A stretch of 64,000 bases of DNA from Trichosphaerium sp. ATCC 40318 (lineage: Eukaryota; Protista; Tubulinea), in the NCBI GenBank assembly GCA_038496445.1, contig JALMLS010000309.1, positions 186,001-250,000 on the forward strand, read 5' to 3'. Below are positions 1,434-43,158 of the stretch, one piece after another. The notes below the pieces were generated by a model. The model had not been told where the DNA came from. It ran no database searches and saw only the letters and a list, made by a program, of their open reading frames with translations. A program made the position numbers and the translations under genes. The first letter of the stretch is position 1. Each line of letters begins with the position of its first letter.

Positions 1434-2972
1434 TTGTTTAGTTTAGAAGGCAGTTTGCTATGTCTACCAACAGAGATTCTAGTTCAGATTTTCGAGCTAG
1501 TTCCAAAATCATTAAAAGCACTAGTTAACACATGCTATGATTTCTATCTAATCATGCGTGATGTCACTGGGTACCCATTTATTGTAGTAAGATCTCTTCA
1601 TGCCGCGAAAACGATTGCCAAATACCCTGGGGTTCTCAAGCATTCAGCAATTTCTGTGGACAGAGCTGTTTACTCTCATATTGTTCCAGTGATTAAAGCT
1701 CTTGCTGGTGCCCGTCAACTCAATATTAGATATTCGGGTATCAAAGACAAGGATATATTACCTCTCACCAATATTCGCTCTATCAACCTCGAAGGCACCT
1801 CAGTATCGAACGCTTGTCTAAAACAATTTTCTGGTGTTCACACAATAAGTCTAAGCCTCACAAACAACATTAGAGGTGACGGCGTTAAAGTACTTGCTGG
1901 TGTTCATACTATTGATCTTGGCTATACCAAAGCGAATGATACTGGTATTCAAGCACTAGCAGGCGTTCACAAGATCGATTTAAGACACACGCGTACAGTG
2001 ACAAATGAAGGAATTAAGGCACTTGCTGGCGTTCATACGATAAATCTATCCCATACAAAAGTCAGAGATACTGGGCTCCAAGCTCTTGCTGGGGTTCATA
2101 CTATTAGCTTGGATTATTGCCAGCTTATAACAAATGAAGGTGTGAAATCTCTTGCTGGAGTTCACACAATTAACCTCGAAAATACAAACATTACTGACGC
2201 TGGTATTATTGAACTATCTGGCGTACATACAATTCATTTACAGGACACACAAGTAACAGATGACGGTATATTGGCATTGGGAGGTGTACATTCGATATAT
2301 TTACAAGGTACTAGCGTCACAGATACAGGAGTTAAGGCACTTGGTGGCGTTCATACTATCAACTTGGATAGGACAAGGATAACTGGGGAGTGTCTATCAG
2401 CTCTTGCTGGTGCTCACTCTGTTTCATTGCAACGCACTACTATCTCAGGAGAGCATCTCGAAAAACTTGCTGGGGTTCACACAATTGACTTAGCACGGGC
2501 CACAACATCAGTTAAAGGCATAGTAGCACTTGCAGGTGTACATACAATTCAGTTACAAAATTGTCCAGCCATGTGGGGTTACAAAGACACAGCTGACAAA
2601 ATTGTCAAAGCGCTTGCTGGTGTTCATACAATTGGCCTATACAGGACTGATGTATCTGATGAGGGTGTTAAAGCATTGAGTGGAGTACATGAGATAGACC
2701 TTGGTCATACAAGAGTTACAGACGAAGGGTTGAAAGCGCTAAAAGGCGTTCATACTATTTGCTTAGCTGGCACAAAGGTAACAGATAAGGGTATGCTAGC
2801 ACTTCAAGGTGTTCATACCATAAAGGTATGGGATACAAAGGTAACAAAAGAAGGTATAAGGCAGCTTTGCATGTCAGGTGTGAGTACTATGTATGTGAGT
2901 GCCGCACAAATAGCTGAGAGCGAACAGGCGCATCTACGCAAAAATTATGGAGTAGAGTTCGTATGTGTGTAG
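1434..2972 (+). CDS. F-box + leucine-rich repeat protein (about 18 repeats of 21-22 aa)
   Basis: N-terminal LLCLPTEILVQIFELV...LVNTC is F-box-like. It is followed by repeats LAGVHTIxLxxTxVTDEGVKA in one uninterrupted 1.5 kb ORF. True start unresolved (the ORF begins at TTG, so a small upstream exon is possible). Confidence 0.85.
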   Translation: MFSLEGSLLCLPTEILVQIFELVPKSLKALVNTCYDFYLIMRDVTGYPFIVVRSLHAAKTIAKYPGVLKHSAISVDRAVYSHIVPVIKALAGARQLNIRYSGIKDKDILPLTNIRSINLEGTSVSNACLKQFSGVHTISLSLTNNIRGDGVKVLAGVHTIDLGYTKANDTGIQALAGVHKIDLRHTRTVTNEGIKALAGVHTINLSHTKVRDTGLQALAGVHTISLDYCQLITNEGVKSLAGVHTINLENTNITDAGIIELSGVHTIHLQDTQVTDDGILALGGVHSIYLQGTSVTDTGVKALGGVHTINLDRTRITGECLSALAGAHSVSLQRTTISGEHLEKLAGVHTIDLARATTSVKGIVALAGVHTIQLQNCPAMWGYKDTADKIVKALAGVHTIGLYRTDVSDEGVKALSGVHEIDLGHTRVTDEGLKALKGVHTICLAGTKVTDKGMLALQGVHTIKVWDTKVTKEGIRQLCMSGVSTMYVSAAQIAESEQAHLRKNYGVEFVCV

Positions 2973-16939: not shown

Positions 16940-17318
16940 ACTTCTCCTCAATTTCAAGTTTTATAGAGCTTATAGAACTATCTATTTTACGATTTTCGTT
17001 TGCTTTTTTATTCCATGACGGTTTGAAACACGTGCTTGGCCCTCCAAAATTTGTGGGAACAAATTTCGGGGCCTGATCGAGCAAGCTGGGATGGTGATTA
17101 TTTATTAAACGATGTAATATCTGTTTGTAATTATTATTATGAATAAAGTGAGGGCTACGGCGCTCGCCTCTTGTTTGAAAAAAAAAAAAAAAGGTTTGAA
17201 ACACAGTGCTCCCAAAAAAAGACACGTGATTGAATACAGCTTTGATAAGCATTAAAAATCACAAAGGGTCCTTAACAACCTATTATAGGGGTTGTTAAAG
17301 GCGCTAATACTGAGCCCT

Positions 17319-18557
17319 ATGGAACTATCACAAGACGTGCGTACCATCAACTTTCACCCAAATAATAACAAAAACCAGATAAACGACACGGAATCGGATA
17401 GATATGGGTTGTTACAGCTTCCAATTGAGATACAAATGTATATTATGGATTTAAGCACATCAGTTTATGTTATTTGGCCTCTATTATCCAGACAAGCAGC
17501 TGTGACATCCCGTTACGACAGTGCGTTGGATAAACATGGATTATTTAAACGTTGGCATAAAAACGGTCAACTTTCCACGAGATGCCTTTTTGTCAACGGT
17601 TTACTCGAAGGAGAGTATATTGTGGCGTCTCAAACAGTATCAACACAAACTATCAGCATGTCCGCACAACAAAAAAATGTACAATCAAACTACCCAAGCG
17701 CCTTCGTTTCAGAGCTTGCAGTTAGTGGTGAAGCATCAAGTGACTTTGACAGTAACGAAGAGGCGATTGACAAACAAGAAAGCCGCGAAGAAGATACTAG
17801 CAATGGTGAAGAAACATCAGAAACAAGTCAAGATGAAGAAAACAGCGACATTGATAAAAAAGTCAACGATGCAGAAGACTCACACGCTGAGCAAGAGCCT
17901 CCTTACATTGTTGATTCTGAAGAAGACAATATTGACGATGTGAGTGTAACCGTACCGGAGATTACAGGACATTTCTATGGACCTGATCGTATTTTTTCAA
18001 TAAGAGAAGAAATCAATAAAATATTACAATGGACGCCTACAGGTGTTGGTTTCTGGCCATTTCACATCTACAAAAAGCGATGGCTTGCAAGTCCAAGGTA
18101 TAGTTTTATGCAGATATACGCACAAGGAGAAGGCAACAAATACACAGACGCATACCTGATGATATGGGAAGATCAATGTGGTACGTTTTCAAAAAGATCT
18201 TTTGTTGTTTGCTCTTGACTTTGTTTTTAACCCTTTTCAGGACCTGTTGGATTTCCTACACACTTGATTTGCTTAGTTTCAGGCTGTGAATATAAATGGG
18301 TTATGGGTAGATCTAGTAGGAGGTTGACAAAAGCAAAAGTTCGGTTAGTTGCACTTGAAGACAGCACTTACGAAATTCCAATGCCTTGTTTTGCAGTTGG
18401 TAGCGATAAGCTTCTTCAATTTGCTAGGTTGCTTTCTCCATTTGTTTCTATAGTACCTCGTGATAGGAACCCACTTTTCGGAGTCGACTTGTTGACCTTC
18501 AAATCTGAGTACCTTGTTTGTAAAGAAAAAAAACAATTAGAAAATTTAAACATTTAA
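17319..18557 (+). CDS. Chimeric protein: F-box + one MORN repeat fused in frame to a paralog of the acidic protein at 38295-39608
   Basis: The 5' part is nearly identical to the 20719 gene up to about 17618. The 3' part matches 38295-39660, including the intron (18181-18240). Confidence 0.75.
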
Positions 18558-19094: not shown

Positions 19095-20096
19095 ATGCCT
19101 AAAACACCAATAACAGTAATAGACAATGTGAATCTATTCTTAGACTGTTTTTTCGAAGAAGATGAAAACAAACCGAAAAGCATTTTTTGGATAACATCAC
19201 CACTAATGTCACGCAATACACCAAAAGCAGCGAAATCTAAGCAAGTCGAAGCATCAAACACCTCAAAATGCTATACTCTCCCACCAGAGATTATTCTGGC
19301 TATTTTCGCATACAACGGCGTCTACACCTCACTGCGTACATATCTCTGTGTTTCAAAGGATTTACGCTCCATCATCATTTCTACAAAGTCTTATTGGCGT
19401 GACATGTACGAAACTCACTTCGTCAACAGTCGCTATTCTGTATGGGAATACCTAGAAGAAAGTGAGGCTTACGGGGATGTCCCAGGATATTTGTCTATCG
19501 CACCAACAGGAGAGTACACAGTAGAAAGTGGAGACAAACAGCAAAGCCAGTCTAAAGGCAAAGGACCTACCGACAAGCCTCCAAGCGATGGCCAAAACCC
19601 TTCTTATTGGTATGAGAGCTGTAGAAACAGAGCAATTGGTAAAATGCTTGAGAAGAGGATCAAAGGGTTACGTTATCCAAACAGGACGGCGAATACTGAG
19701 CCAGAGTTTGAAGAATTTTATACGGTTTTGAAGGACGATGACAAAGACGAAAACGCTTTGCATCACGTGCTTGAAAAGATAAAAGTAGACGAAGAGGCAA
19801 ACCTTCGAGCTATGACTCCTCAAGTATTTATAAGATTCATAGAACAAGAATTAAAAGAAGTCGAAGACCCTCCTTTCTCTGATGAAGAGGACGAAGAAGG
19901 TGATTATAATTGGAAAGAGAAAACACCAAAGTTACTCGAAGGTCTTAAAGATATTTTCAACGAAGAGAAATGGGGATTAAAGAATTATGGTTGTGTAGCT
20001 CTTGGTAGATGGGAGAATCAATGTTATTTCGTTTATGGAGTATCGCAAGGTTTGCGTGCTATTGTAGGTGTTTGTGCTATTGTGGATAACTCGTGA
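19095..20096 (+). CDS. F-box protein with C-terminal NuiA (nuclease A inhibitor)-like domain
   Basis: F-box TLPPEIILAIFAY...YLCVSKDLR; C-terminus IKGLRYP...TEPEFEEF...LKDIF...ALGRWENQCYFVYGVSQG...IVGVCAIVDNS. Intronless. The real start may be the ATG at 19206. F-box call is firm, NuiA call is by eye. Confidence 0.7.
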   Translation: MPKTPITVIDNVNLFLDCFFEEDENKPKSIFWITSPLMSRNTPKAAKSKQVEASNTSKCYTLPPEIILAIFAYNGVYTSLRTYLCVSKDLRSIIISTKSYWRDMYETHFVNSRYSVWEYLEESEAYGDVPGYLSIAPTGEYTVESGDKQQSQSKGKGPTDKPPSDGQNPSYWYESCRNRAIGKMLEKRIKGLRYPNRTANTEPEFEEFYTVLKDDDKDENALHHVLEKIKVDEEANLRAMTPQVFIRFIEQELKEVEDPPFSDEEDEEGDYNWKEKTPKLLEGLKDIFNEEKWGLKNYGCVALGRWENQCYFVYGVSQGLRAIVGVCAIVDNS

Positions 20097-20718
20097 ATGC
20101 TAGCTCAAATAAATAAAAGTTACTTATCTCTAGTTTTTTTTAGTCATACAGGTTTTTTTTATTAGCAAGTCAGTTTATTAACACGACGGTACATTCCAAA
20201 TGCCTAAGCATGTAGCGCAACAAACACTAAGGGTTACAATCCCTTCGCGATTAACTGATTGGGGCTGTGGGGTGTAACAATGGTTGTTTTTTTGAAAGGG
20301 TTAATGGGTGTTGGTTGATGGGTTGTTACTCCGTTCTGTGGGTTTGATAAGGGGTTGCAGTACCCGTCTGGCTTGAACAGCGGCCTGAATAAGTACTTAC
20401 TATCTTAGTACAAGAATGCTTTTGTTATTAGACTTACATCTGTCTTTGTTTAAACACTAATAGCCAAGCATACGAACAAAGCACAAATAATAGTATAATG
20501 CAGACTCTTCGAAGTAGGATCAACGAGCATGGTTGGAGCAGCTGTTGCAGCAGTAGATGCAGCTGTTAGAGTTGTTATATCTGTTGTCAGGCATTGTTGG
20601 TGTACCAGCGATTAAGTAAACGGCTTGACATTGGATTAATGCTCTTGATAATTTAAGGCATACCCTTAAGTTACAACATCTCGCATTAGACTTATCCCAT
20701 TAAACTAGCCGCCCTGAA

Positions 20719-21651
20719 ATGGAAACACAACTAGAGGTATTAAGCAGTATACAAATTAAGATAAACGATGCAGAATCGGAGGACCTTGGGTTGTTACAGC
20801 TTCCAATTGAGATACAAATGTATGTTATGGATTTTAGCACATCACTTTATGTTATTTGGCCTCTATTATCCAGAAAAGCAGCTGTGACATCCCGTTACGA
20901 CAGCGCGTTAGATAAACATGGATTATTTAAACGTTGGCATAAAACCGTCGGTCAACTTTCCGCGAGATGCCTTTTTGTCAACGGCAAACGCGAAGGAGAG
21001 TACAACGAGTGGTTTGAAAATGGACAAGATAAGTTAATATGCTCTTACACCGATGGTAAAATCGAAGGAGAGTACAAAGATTGGCATGAAAATGGAAACC
21101 TTAGGCTAGTGCGCTCTCATATCAATGGTAAACGAGAAGGAGAGTGCATGAAATGGCACCGTAATGGAACATTGTACAAGAGTTCGTTTTATACACATGA
21201 CAGACTCGAAGGGGAAAGAAGGATCTGGTACATTAGCAGAAAGTTGCGTGAGGATTCCTTTTATGTAAATGGTTTGTTAGATGGAGAATACAAGCATTGG
21301 CGCTCTAACGGAAACTTACGTATTCATTGCTTCTATAAACAGGGTATCCTTGATGGAGAAAGCAAAAGTTTTTATAATTCCGGATACCTTTATTATCAAC
21401 GGTTTTATGTTAATGGTGAGAAGGAAGGAGAGCATAAAAGTTGGTACCAACATGGTCAACTATGTGATCAAAGCTTTTATGTAAAAGGGAAACTCCATGG
21501 AGAGTATAAAAGGTGGTACGAAGACGGTTCATTAAATGCGCATTGTTTTTACATAAACGATGAGCGCCATGGAGAGTATAAGTGTTGGTGTTATAATGGA
21601 GAACTAGAAGTGCAATGCACTTATAAAAATGGCAAAAAGGTTGAGGAATAG
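20719..21651 (+). CDS. F-box-like + MORN-variant (YwqK-like) repeat protein
   Basis: LLQLPIEIQMYVMDF followed by about 10 repeats of GEYKxWxxNGxLxxxxFYxNG; intronless. Confidence 0.9.
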   Translation: METQLEVLSSIQIKINDAESEDLGLLQLPIEIQMYVMDFSTSLYVIWPLLSRKAAVTSRYDSALDKHGLFKRWHKTVGQLSARCLFVNGKREGEYNEWFENGQDKLICSYTDGKIEGEYKDWHENGNLRLVRSHINGKREGECMKWHRNGTLYKSSFYTHDRLEGERRIWYISRKLREDSFYVNGLLDGEYKHWRSNGNLRIHCFYKQGILDGESKSFYNSGYLYYQRFYVNGEKEGEHKSWYQHGQLCDQSFYVKGKLHGEYKRWYEDGSLNAHCFYINDERHGEYKCWCYNGELEVQCTYKNGKKVEE

Positions 21652-38294: not shown

Positions 38295-39608
38295 TTATTC
38301 TTTATACACAAGTTCCTCAGATTTGAACGTCTTTAGTTCTGCTCCAAAAAGCTTCTTTCTATCGCGAGGTACTATAGAAACAAATGGAGAAAGCAACCTA
38401 GCAAATTGAAGAAGTTTATCTTTGCCAACTGCGAAGCAAGGTACTTCAATTTTAGAGGCACTATTTTCACTTGCTACTAAGCGAACTTGATCTTTTGACA
38501 TCTTCTTGCTAGATCTACCCATAACCCATTTATGTTCACAATCTGACATTAAACAAATCAAGTGTGTAGGGAATCCAACAGGTCCTGAAAAAGATTAAAA
38601 ACAAAGTCAAGAGCAAACAACAAAAGGTCTTTTTGAAAACGTACCACATTGATCTTCCCATATCATCAAGTATGCATCTGTGAATTCTTTGCCTTTTCCT
38701 TGTGCGTATATCTGCATAAAACTGTTCTTTGGCTTTGCTGTGCTTCGCTTTTTGAATACATGGAACGGCCAGTAGCCAACACCTACAGTTGACCATTTTT
38801 GAGCCTCAATGTTTTTAAACAATTTGCTGGTTTCTTCTCTTATTGAAAAAATACGATCAGGTCCATAGAAATGTCCTGTAATCTCCGGCGCGGCTACATC
38901 CGCATCATCATCACATTCTTCAGAATCACATTCATCATTATCGTCATCATCATCCTCACATTCCTCAGAATCACATTCATCATTATCGTCGTCAACATCC
39001 TCGCATTCCTCAGAATCGCATTCGTTATCATCGCCATCTTCTTCATCACTGGCTTCATTATCTTCATCACTGTTTTCCTCAACTTCACTGGTTTCGGAAG
39101 TTTCTTCAGCATCGCTATTATCTTCTTCGTCAATTTCTTGTTCTTCATCACTTTCTTGTTCATCATCACTTGCTTCTTCATTGCTTTCACAGTCGCTTGA
39201 TGCTTCACCACTAACTTCTTCGCTAGCGCTTTGATTCTCTTCGTCGCTGTTCTCTTCACCTGCGTCGTCGCTTGCACTAGCCATGGATTCCTCTTCATCG
39301 CTTACATCTCCGTTTGTACTGGTATTTGTGGATTGTTCTTCATTGTCACTTTCCTCCTCAACAGCAGGCTCTTCTTTCTCTCGTTTGGTCTTGGCTGGCT
39401 TGTTGTTCATTTTTTTTGGTTTTTTACCCTTCTTTACTGGCGTAACTCTTTTGCTTGTAGTTTTTGCCTTGCGCTTTGTTTGTTGTGCACGTTGTTTCTT
39501 TGATGGTTTTGTTACAATTTTCTTTGTTCTTTTATTTCGTGTTTCAAGTTCAGCTACGATTCCGCTTTGTTTGTTAGATTGTTTAGTATTTTTTCGTCTT
39601 GAGGACAT
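38295..39608 (-). CDS. Protein with Lys-rich and Asp/Glu-rich low-complexity regions and an unknown globular C-terminal domain
   Basis: ORF 38607-39608 plus terminal exon 38295-38585. The domain and the intron are conserved in the 17.3-18.6 kb paralog. Confidence 0.8.
38900..39030 (-). repeat. About three copies of a 39-bp coding tandem repeat (DDDNDECDSEECE)
   Basis: Repeated cattcctcagaatcacattcatcattatcgtc units. Confidence 0.85.
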
Positions 39609-39883: not shown

Positions 39884-40894
39884 CTATTTACTGACCACTT
39901 GTTGTATTTGTTCGATCAAGTTACCATTGTTATACGTACATTGAACTTCTAGTTCTCCATCATTGTGCCAACGCTTGTAGTCTCCATGCCACTCATCGTT
40001 TACGTAAAAACCATGCTCATTTAATACACCATCATCATACCAACTCTTGTACTCTCCATGGAGTTTCCCTTTTACATAAAAGCAATGTTCACATAGTCCT
40101 CCATTGTTGTTATACCAACTTTTTTGCTCTCCTTCCTTCTCACCATTAACATAAAACCGTTGATAACATACACGTCCATTGTGATACCATTGGTAGTTCT
40201 TTCCTTCAAGTACACCGTTACTATAAACGCGATGAGCAATTAATATTCCACGAGAACTCCAAGCCTTGTATTCCCCATGTGACAAACCATTTGCATAACA
40301 AGTCTTCACATACAAGTTTCCATTCTCATGCCAACTCTTACTTTCCCCTTCTTCCTTGCCATTTGAGAAAACTTCAAGTCGGCACAAGTTACCATTCTCA
40401 TGCCACTTTGTGTACTCTCCCTCTAGTTTACCATTGAAGTATAAACAATGCACATGTAATTCTTCATTGTCATGCCATTCTTTGTACTCTCCTTCGATTT
40501 TACCATCGGTGTAAGAGCATATTAACTTATCTTGTCCATTTTCAAACCACTCCTTGTACTCTCCTTCGAGTTTACCGTTGACAAAAAGGCATCTCGTGGA
40601 AAGTTGACCGTTTTTATGCCAACGTTTAAATAATCCATGTTTATCCAACGCACTGTTGTACCTGGTTGTCACTGCTGCTTTTATGGATAATAACGGCCAA
40701 ACAATGTATGAGATTGTGCTTAAATCCAATACATCTAGTTGTAACTCAAACGGTAGCTGTAAATCCATTACATCTAGTTGTAACTCAAACGGTAGCTGTA
40801 ACAAGCCACAACAATCTACTTCTGCTTCTGTTATCTTGTTTTTGGTTATTCTCTGATTATTACTGCTGTTTTGTACCTCTTGCTTTGCTTCCAT
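39884..40894 (-). CDS. F-box-like + MORN-variant (YwqK-like) repeat protein
   Basis: Paralog of 20719-21651; intronless; F-box core tandemly duplicated. Confidence 0.9.
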   Translation of the reverse strand: MEAKQEVQNSSNNQRITKNKITEAEVDCCGLLQLPFELQLDVMDLQLPFELQLDVLDLSTISYIVWPLLSIKAAVTTRYNSALDKHGLFKRWHKNGQLSTRCLFVNGKLEGEYKEWFENGQDKLICSYTDGKIEGEYKEWHDNEELHVHCLYFNGKLEGEYTKWHENGNLCRLEVFSNGKEEGESKSWHENGNLYVKTCYANGLSHGEYKAWSSRGILIAHRVYSNGVLEGKNYQWYHNGRVCYQRFYVNGEKEGEQKSWYNNNGGLCEHCFYVKGKLHGEYKSWYDDGVLNEHGFYVNDEWHGDYKRWHNDGELEVQCTYNNGNLIEQIQQVVSK

Positions 40895-41198
40895 TGACTT
40901 TGCCAATTCAAGTCATTAGACGGAATGTTCTTTTTTTTCAGTCCCTTTTTTTAATGCCAACAGCAAAGAGCTGGACCTGGGGCTGACTGCTCTGCCAATT
41001 TTTGCTTTTTTTGGCTAACTGCTTGATTTTGGGACCTATCGTAAAAGAAGCCTTCAACTGGTAGAACTGTTATACAATCAAGAAGGTAGGTGTCAAGATT
41101 ACTTAGCAAGTATGTAGCTTAAACATATTTGCATCTCATAAAAGAATCACGTTTCTTACATTCGCTACAATAATTAACCTTTGTTACACATGTTTTTG

Positions 41199-43158
41199 TT
41201 ACTGTAGCTTGTCCACCCTCACGTTATCAATAGTAAATACACCATTACCAGCGCCTCCTAAGAACATCCTAAAAGTCAACTGCGAAGTGCCACCGTAGCC
41301 AGCACCAATGTCGAAAAAGAAACGCATAGGCAATGTCGAAGGAAAAAAGTCACGACCTCCAGCTGAAAAACCAAGCCTATCATACCATAACTCCACTCTT
41401 ATCTTGGATCCTTGGACAGTGTTACCTGAACTTGACCATGCATCAAAATGAATCCTGTACCTCGAGGGACCAGGATGTTCCCAATCGAAATTTCCATTCG
41501 ACAATTCTACTCCTCTTAAATCGAAGCTATTGTACATTTTGACAAAGCCTGATACACCCCCTCTATATCCTAGAGGATCTACGCTAGCAGGATAAACTGC
41601 AGATAATGTCCAAGCAGTCCTATCGCCGTTCCCAGAAAACTGCCCGTTTTTAGGAGAGTTGGTCGTTGGGAGGTATTGAGGCGCAAGATATCCTCCAATG
41701 TTGTCCTTCATGTCTTCTAAAGTTACTATTGCACTTGCCACTCTTACTTCATCATGATATATCTCTCTTTTTGGTATGGTACGACCAGCCGAAGGGTTGT
41801 ACCTGTCGTAGTGGTAGATACCGAGTTTAAACTCTAAGTTGTTTTTGACTTCATTGAAAATAGTTGGACCGTTGTAGTTTACGACTAAAGCGCCGTTCCG
41901 CCAAATCTTAAGAAATCCGTTATCGTCACTCTGCCACTTTGAGTGTATTATCCATTTGACCCATCGGTTCTTTACAAATGGCTCGAAGTAGTGTGTAACG
42001 CCGACAATGTCGGTACTACTAGGGTTATTTACAAGTGAGTATTTGGTCACAATAGCCAGCTTGTCACGTCTCAGGTCAAAGGCGAGAGGTGGGTTTAACG
42101 ATGATCCTGCATCTTGTTCTACACGCCATTGAGCAACGATATCTCCCTCATTAGCATTTTCCCAGTCCGTAGGAACTTTCATGTTGAACGCATACCTGTT
42201 ACGGAAATAGTTAGTTTCACCAGACCGAAATGGCAAAGTCAAAGGTCACGTGCCAATTTTCTGTGCCTAAACCGCCAGCTCCAAACTCACAATCAAGTTC
42301 TGCACGATCTCTGAAAGGAAAATTAACTGTGTCTTGATAGCGCCAAGTAGTAAGGTGTCCACGTCCCACATATCCACTACAGTACAAATGAGTAAAAGTA
42401 AGAACGGACAACTTTAGACAACCATGTTTTTGTATTTAGAAGCCACGTGTTTTCTGGACGTACCCAGATACTATTTGTGATGATATAGTAGATGGTAACA
42501 AGTGAGTCTTCCATACAGGGGACCTTGTATAGTAATTGAAATTGTCATGAAAGTTGAGTGCAGTGTCATAGTTGGAGGAACTCAAATCGACGTAATTTCG
42601 TCCTCTGTATACTGTTGGGTTACTGCTAGTACGTGGGACTTGACCTGATCTTGTTGTAATAAATATCTGATCGATCTGTGACGGTTCATAGAGGGCAGTC
42701 CTGTCGTGCACAATAATCAGCGAATTCTGACCTTGTTGCATATCGAAGGCAACTGCATTTGATCTAGCCGTTGCGTGACCGCCATTGTTGATTCTAACCC
42801 ACTCCAATGAAGACGTCCGAAACACTCGAGAGTCGGAAACTGGATTTTGAAGTGAGGTGCCCAAAGAAACCGAATATGGTAATTTTTCTGAATACAACGC
42901 CTTTTCTCGCTCTCCTTGCGATGTGATACGGAGCCAAACGTAGTATTTCCTACTCTCTCGCAAGTTCAGTATGTACTCAGCTTTCCCTTGATTCCAACCG
43001 GCCCATATAGGCGTTTGGATCACGTGACAGCCCTTTGCGAGGCTTGCTTTGCCTATTTTCATTGGAGCTGTTATAACGCCATTTTCAGCCTCTAGATAGA
43101 AGCTCTCGTGTGCATAGGCTGCGCAGATTACTACAGTCACCCAAATCAATAGTTTCAT
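41199..43158 (-). CDS. Secreted polysaccharide-lyase-like protein (heparinase I/Polysacc_lyase-like jelly roll) flanked by CBM-like modules
   Basis: Signal peptide; YLEAENG...IDQIFIT (CBM6/35-like); DRAEL, ENWYAF, IVAQW, PPLAF, GFLKIWRNG, FKLGIYH, IYHDEVRV; NGQF...IDNVRV (CBM4/9-like). Confidence 0.75.

Follow-up and report, generated by a model that had tools for sequence, protein, structure and literature searches.

What kind of module stands behind the F-box of a 333-codon gene in the amoeba Trichosphaerium sp. ATCC 40318, and could it descend from the bacterial nuclease inhibitor NuiA? The gene lies at 19095–20096 on the forward strand of a 64,000-nucleotide stretch (the window; positions 186,001 to 250,000 of contig JALMLS010000309.1), and an initial annotation had read it as an F-box fused to a NuiA-like domain that would bind nucleases and route them to the proteasome. 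NuiA inhibits NucA-type beta-beta-alpha-metal nucleases and serves as an immunity protein. We find that the C-terminal ~168 residues define a very small eukaryotic family in which an F-box always precedes the same conserved domain, and that this domain resembles NuiA collinearly, up to the last residues, at a level barely beyond chance. The explanation that best covers all of the observations is a functional, intronless gene for a Skp1-cullin-F-box (SCF) substrate receptor with a domain that is possibly NuiA-derived, and we regard that explanation, taken whole, as evenly poised between right and wrong. The features on which the argument draws are these:

19095–20096, forward strand: complete, intronless coding sequence, from the listing of open reading frames (ORFs) and the full-length homologues P0001 and P0003, which have the same architecture.
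19095–19274, forward strand: N-terminal leader, aa 1–60, absent from the homologues, which have ~25–35 residues ahead of the F-box (alignment A2).
19275–19409, forward strand: F-box, aa 61–105, the Skp1-binding handle, from a Pfam PF12937 match.
19410–19589, forward strand: linker, aa 106–165, poorly conserved, with a Ser/Lys/Gly/Pro/Gln-rich stretch; gapped in alignment A2 and coil in the AlphaFold2 prediction.
19590–20093, forward strand: conserved C-terminal domain, aa 166–333, the candidate substrate-binding module, from the phmmer match to P0001 and 21 invariant columns.
19668–19718, forward strand: motif L-x-Y-P-x3-[AS]-N-x-E-x5-F, aa 192–208, with six invariant residues; it pairs with the strand-loop-strand GLLxxSESEYPFEVF of NuiA.
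19863–19907, forward strand: acidic loop, aa 257–271, the centre of hmmsearch alignments with the acidic loop of NuiA.
19986–20093, forward strand: C-terminal three-strand segment with the invariant IVDNS terminus (strands E134–138, E145–152 and E157–164 of the domain model).
20108–20117, forward strand: two overlapping AATAAA hexamers, 12–21 nt past the stop codon, a possible polyadenylation signal, read from the sequence.

The ORF listing and direct reading agree on a 333-aa frame that opens with ATG and closes with TGA. Since the homologues have no counterpart of the 60-residue leader, the internal Met38 (19206) could be the real start of the protein, and the AATAAA pair may serve as a polyadenylation signal in Trichosphaerium sp. 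The sequence strings that the initial annotation had matched to a NuiA pattern are all present in the translation in the order given, and the protein does end in IVDNS.

When phmmer was run exhaustively against 1.84 billion representative proteins, it returned two matches, one of which, P0001, aligns with residues 166–333 of the query (E 5.5e-6); by BLASTP, P0001 scores E 5e-12 and the alignment reaches into the F-box. The other match covers 30 residues only (query aa 231–260), and we set it aside as chance. A profile search added P0003, a 320-aa intronless protein from a repeat-rich 10.9-kb metagenome contig. A degenerate DNA pattern, written by hand on the C-terminal motif, matched locally only the known members and, in metagenome contigs, one further gene, present on two contigs (L085 and L086); in viral contigs it had no match. 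Other approaches extended the family no further: a pattern derived from the family alignment, which fell on the acidic loop, found nothing in metagenome or viral contigs, a word-index search for homologues of the full protein had no match, a PDB sequence search gave noise only, tblastn of the C-terminal domain against plasmids gave a single chance match, and tblastn within the window revealed no paralogue of the gene.

In all four known members the C-terminal domain stands behind an F-box, and the protein ends in I[VI]DNS. In the family alignment, for which an X was placed at the break between the pieces of L085, 21 columns are the same in all four members, the last three residues among them, and the window protein retains all 21. 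They include L192, Y194, P195, N200, E202 and F208 in the motif at aa 192–208, and G304, W306, E307, N308, F312, G315, V324, G325, I329, D331, N332 and S333 in the C-terminal segment. The window protein is the outlier, with 28–32% identity to the other three, which share 44–54% with one another. Because the four members share both the F-box and the domain, and the window protein keeps the invariant residues, this is a genuine gene family, and the two-part architecture is ancestral to it.

The F-box itself is the firmest part of the reading. Pfam F-box-like (PF12937) matches residues 61–105 at 25.8 bits against a cut-off of 24.3 (E 9e-6) as the sole Pfam domain of the protein, and at 26.9 bits when the N-terminal half is searched alone. 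An F-box of the LPxE[IL] type is likewise conserved, N-terminal to the distinct domain, in P0003, L085 and P0001, if the upstream exon of P0001 is included; the F-box of the initial annotation is thus borne out both by a score above the gathering threshold and by its retention in all of the homologues. SCF substrate receptors are laid out in just this way, with an F-box ahead of a conserved interaction domain, and for this reason the window protein is most likely such a receptor.

As deposited, the gene model of P0001 is truncated, and its start Met and the initial half of its F-box lie in an upstream exon (MPPK..., L001:323–470). The intron concerned is a 37-nt, GT-AG, phase-0 intron at L001:425–461, which points to a source organism with very short introns. 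P0003 is the lone convincing gene on its contig (L003:1–10883), the remainder consisting of low-complexity, microsatellite-like repeats on both strands. In the gene at L085:150–1113, which lies on the reverse strand of L086, the F-box is in frame 2, the middle in frame 3, and the tail in frame 1, and each of the two frame changes is a +1 shift within a C/T-rich run. Two independent assemblies (ENA ERZ778023 and JGI Ga0209935) agree on this sequence to the letter, so assembly error does not explain the shifts, and the gene is either a genuinely frameshifted copy or a case of unusual decoding. The three homologues begin with short basic stretches that resemble nuclear localisation signals (PAKRQH, PPKRKGEG and EAKRFK; P0003 aa 1–22, L085 frame 2 at ~nt 170–240, and L001 323–400), and the leader of the window protein is different and longer, with a weak basic patch only.

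For the comparison with NuiA, our reference was the protein encoded on the Nostoc plasmid pCC7120alpha (L004:30743–31147), which adjoins NucA and matches Pfam NuiA at 180.6 bits, together with relatives gathered down to 27% identity. A C-terminally anchored profile alignment and the maximum accuracy (MAC) realignment of hhalign both recovered, unprompted, the register in which the initial annotation had laid the domain over NuiA. The score of the anchored alignment lies at z 2.5–3.8 relative to shuffles, with p 0.003–0.008 for column shuffles and 0.017 for block shuffles. Toward the C-terminus the spacing is G-x2-E-x4-[FY]-x2-G-x8/9-G-x7-end in the family and G-x2-E-x3-Y-x2-G-x8-G-x7-end in NuiA, a difference of a single residue. 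NuiA inhibits its nuclease through a C-terminal residue that bridges the metal ion (PMC2790893), a mechanism that requires just such a strictly conserved free C-terminus as the family has.

Structure prediction and language-model features gave two further signals. The domain model consists of one helix, a low-confidence coil, four helices and three terminal strands, and this predicted order is compatible with the NuiA fold, a central sheet flanked by helices (PMC2790893). In a Foldseek search with the domain model, NuiA (2o3b_B) ranked 46 of 350,542 chains (probability 0.28, E 0.55, TM-scores 0.23/0.27); nothing in the list was significant, and 2o3b_B had the highest probability and TM-scores in it. 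An ESM Atlas feature search with residues 86–255 of P0001 placed NuiA first and NuiA/NuiA_2 second among the named clusters with a score of 0.84; these matches share 190 and 182 of 256 features, and the ten best family-bearing matches all belong to one family or clan. That the Atlas should return exactly the family named beforehand is hard to obtain by chance, and we treat it as a lead only. Alignment register, Foldseek, and language-model features are thus three weak signals that pick out the same small family from among thousands.

A longer series of results weighs against NuiA ancestry. Pfam NuiA (PF07924), NuiA_2 (PF23151) and NCBIfam are unmatched at E<=10 by all four members and by their sub-pieces, and hhalign of the family against NuiA yields a probability of 0.1–0.5% with E 0.1–0.4, a score at the level of noise in the expected register, from shallow profiles (30–55 NuiA sequences against 3–4 of the family; 1.8 and 3.5 effective sequences, Neff). 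With filters off, the NuiA hidden Markov model (HMM) gives the window ORF 0.4 bits. In the other direction, the family HMM scores at best 7.9 bits against NuiA (column-shuffle p 0.03), and 6.9 bits against reversed NuiA. The acidic loop at aa 257–271 supplies most of this score by pairing with the acidic loop of NuiA, and, given that reversed and column-shuffled NuiA controls nearly match it, the signal is mainly that of the shared loop. In the anchored alignment, too, a reversed profile scores almost equally, and the last 36 residues, at p 0.006 against shuffles, reach only p 0.02–0.07 against windows of real proteins. All NuiA homologues, including that of Deinococcus, end in ET, and the F-box family ends in invariant DNS. 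The conserved Glu24 of the SESE loop reportedly enters the nuclease active site in the NucA-NuiA complex; in the best alignments it faces the invariant Asn200, with the invariant Glu202 two residues further on in a loop three residues longer than that of NuiA. The AlphaFold models are poor, with a predicted local distance difference test (pLDDT) score of 34 for the single-sequence model, and a pLDDT of 45 and a predicted TM-score (pTM) of 0.42 for the domain modelled from three sequences. The VIA-align lists obtained with these low-confidence models lack NuiA, and it is likewise absent from the Foldseek results for the full-length model, the poorer of the two. The window protein's own domain yielded no usable match in the Atlas feature search, and the score of 0.84 for the P0001 domain is below the 0.9 under which the tool itself rates matches as leads only. 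Finally, tblastn with Nostoc NucA found no NucA/EndoG-like gene in the window or on L001, L003, L085 or L086 (none below E 2); linkage to NucA is seen in bacterial NuiA loci and is not to be expected in a eukaryote.

A few other searches bear on the same comparison. A bridge search from the Deinococcus NuiA homologue recovered only that protein, viral contigs had no match to the NuiA alignment, and an Atlas shape search with the models returned only weak, unrelated rows. When the family HMM was run against decoys, NuiA sequences crowded the top of the list, an enrichment that we dismissed as composition, as column-shuffled and reversed NuiA controls score similarly. Among plasmid sequences, an unannotated NuiA fragment on a Pseudanabaena plasmid (L089:373–675) lacks the N-terminal third and is probably a pseudogene.

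Of the proposed NuiA pattern, then, the collinear resemblance stands and its register was recovered; as a statistical match it is not secure, lying barely beyond chance. Profile comparison gave no significant similarity to NuiA in Pfam, NCBIfam, or hhalign, and structural comparison gave none with Foldseek or VIA-align, both on models with pLDDT 34 and 45, which leave the structural test underpowered. The calibrated statistics are all negative or marginal, and the link to NuiA is not demonstrated. We place the proposal that the C-terminal domain is a very divergent descendant of NuiA at the midpoint, with as much reason to accept as to doubt it.

The main competitor is a lineage-restricted, undescribed fold with no evolutionary tie to NuiA, standing behind the F-box of a substrate receptor, in which case the resemblance would come down to comparable size, the acidic loop that both possess, and a common layout of helices followed by a beta-meander. 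Such a fold would account for the negative outcome of every calibrated sequence test, for reversed and shuffled controls that nearly equal the observed scores, for structure searches without a significant match to anything, and for the replacement of both the terminal ET of NuiA and the Glu of its SESE loop. It accounts less readily for three methods that pick the pre-specified NuiA (the register, the Foldseek rank of 46 among 350,542, and the two leading named clusters of the Atlas), and for a Gly/Glu/aromatic spacing that, counted to the exact C-terminus, is one residue off that of NuiA. We consider it a substantial possibility that falls somewhat short of an even chance. Two more specific identities were considered and dropped: a SUKH domain of the FBXO3 type, as no SMI1_KNR4/SUKH profile in Pfam matches at E<=10, and an origin in giant viruses, as there were no matches in viral contigs.

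Descent from NuiA could also have been followed by a change of partner, much as SUKH was retargeted in FBXO3, so that the domain would now present a non-nuclease protein to the SCF complex. The functional residues Glu24 and the terminal Glu-Thr are not kept, bacterial immunity domains have been described as flexible binders that were reused as adaptors for diverse eukaryotic partners (PMC3113570), and the gene sits among F-box genes with varied C-terminal modules (an F-box-leucine-rich repeat [LRR] gene at 1434–2972, and MORN-repeat genes); the invariant free C-terminus and the N-x-E loop, however, suggest that a NuiA-like insertion mechanism was retained, and we judge retargeting of this kind improbable. 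Even less plausible, to the point of being a very long shot, is that the gene is a decaying or non-functional copy within a birth-and-death F-box repertoire, its frame open by chance. The intact 333-codon frame with its ATG start, the retention of 21 of 21 family-invariant residues including the last three, an F-box still above the Pfam cut-off, and the AATAAA signals past the stop codon all speak for function, although the window protein has diverged furthest of the four (28–32% identity, against 44–54% among the others), its 60-aa leader is unconserved, and the L085/L086 homologue shows two frame changes on which two independent assemblies agree.

Returning to an SCF receptor whose domain may derive from NuiA, we can outline how such a protein might work. 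The F-box (aa 61–105) would dock on Skp1, and the C-terminal domain (aa 166–333) would hold the protein destined for ubiquitination. If the domain is NuiA-derived, the likeliest target would be a nuclease of the NucA/EndoG beta-beta-alpha-metal type; the invariant free C-terminus could then reach the catalytic metal in the manner of the terminal Thr of NuiA, and the nuclease would be both blocked and marked for degradation. Such a nuclease could be the cell's own EndoG, having escaped, or could come from bacterial prey or parasites. The choice of a nuclease as target is speculative, as it follows only from the uncertain NuiA link. The full proposal is that this protist family carries a domesticated NuiA domain whose invariant free C-terminus occupies the metal site of a NucA/EndoG-type nuclease, and that the F-box at the same time directs ubiquitination of this nuclease; it seems to us unlikely, if still worth stating.

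Should the tail prove to be NuiA-derived, it would be the second independent bacterial nuclease-immunity domain wired into the eukaryotic ubiquitin system, after SUKH in FBXO3, and would offer a concrete candidate for the means by which an amoeba that feeds on bacteria gets rid of dangerous non-specific nucleases; inhibition coupled with destruction would be a combined safeguard not described for any nuclease. If the tail is not derived from NuiA, what remains is a conserved domain that accompanies F-boxes and is very rare (four members among ~15 billion predicted proteins and metagenome DNA), and its strictly conserved free C-terminus points to an unusual binding mode.

The window has a G+C content of 38.6% and few long ORFs, and the neighbours of the gene include several MORN-variant repeat protein genes and the F-box-LRR gene. 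The product of the latter (1434–2972, forward strand; 512 aa) has a weak N-terminal F-box-like match (20.4 bits) and a strong LRR_6 match (E 4e-23), and belongs to the local F-box repertoire. The ORF at 17292–18218 (forward strand) shares its N-terminal segment with MORN-repeat genes at 20719–21651 (forward) and 39884–40906 (reverse), and its acidic region and C-terminal ~70 residues with an acidic protein encoded at 38607–39608 (reverse), and has the look of a chimera between two kinds of local gene. Elsewhere, a polysaccharide-lyase-family protein (PF14099, E 1e-28) adjoins an ORF of 240 aa that begins like a signal peptide and matches nothing in Pfam (41199–42242 and 42436–43158, both on the reverse strand).

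A literature search found no paper that pairs NuiA with an F-box, and three known systems offer the closest comparisons. NuiA itself (an inhibitor of the sugar-non-specific nuclease of Nostoc/Anabaena PCC 7120; PF07924; PDB 2O3B chain B and 1J57) has a core of ~135 aa, against ~150 aa plus an acidic insert in the family. The two are alike in the helix order and terminal three-strand meander predicted for the family, in the collinear spacing of motifs to the exact C-terminus, in an acidic loop ahead of the last helix, and in a strictly conserved free C-terminus. Unlike NuiA, the window protein comes from a eukaryote, has an F-box joined to the domain, and lacks an adjoining NucA gene; it ends in DNS rather than ET, carries an invariant Asn at the position aligned to Glu24, and has no significant HMM, profile-profile, or structural match to NuiA. 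Drosophila EndoGI, which inhibits EndoG in the nucleus (PMC2790893), is built of all-helical tandem repeats, has an unrelated fold and no F-box, and acts by stoichiometric inhibition only; what it would share with the window protein is the proposed protection of nucleic acids from a stray EndoG-type nuclease by an inhibitor that contacts the catalytic metal site. The third comparison is architectural: a SUKH nuclease-immunity domain stands behind the F-box in FBXO3/SKIP16 and, independently, in fungi, and is proposed to recruit ubiquitination substrates (PMC3113570). The window protein differs from FBXO3/SKIP16 in its domain family, with no SMI1_KNR4/SUKH match and no ApaG/DUF525 domain, and shares with them, and with the fungal F-box-SUKH-4 proteins, an N-terminal F-box followed, if its tail is indeed NuiA-like, by an immunity-type domain in the place of substrate recognition.
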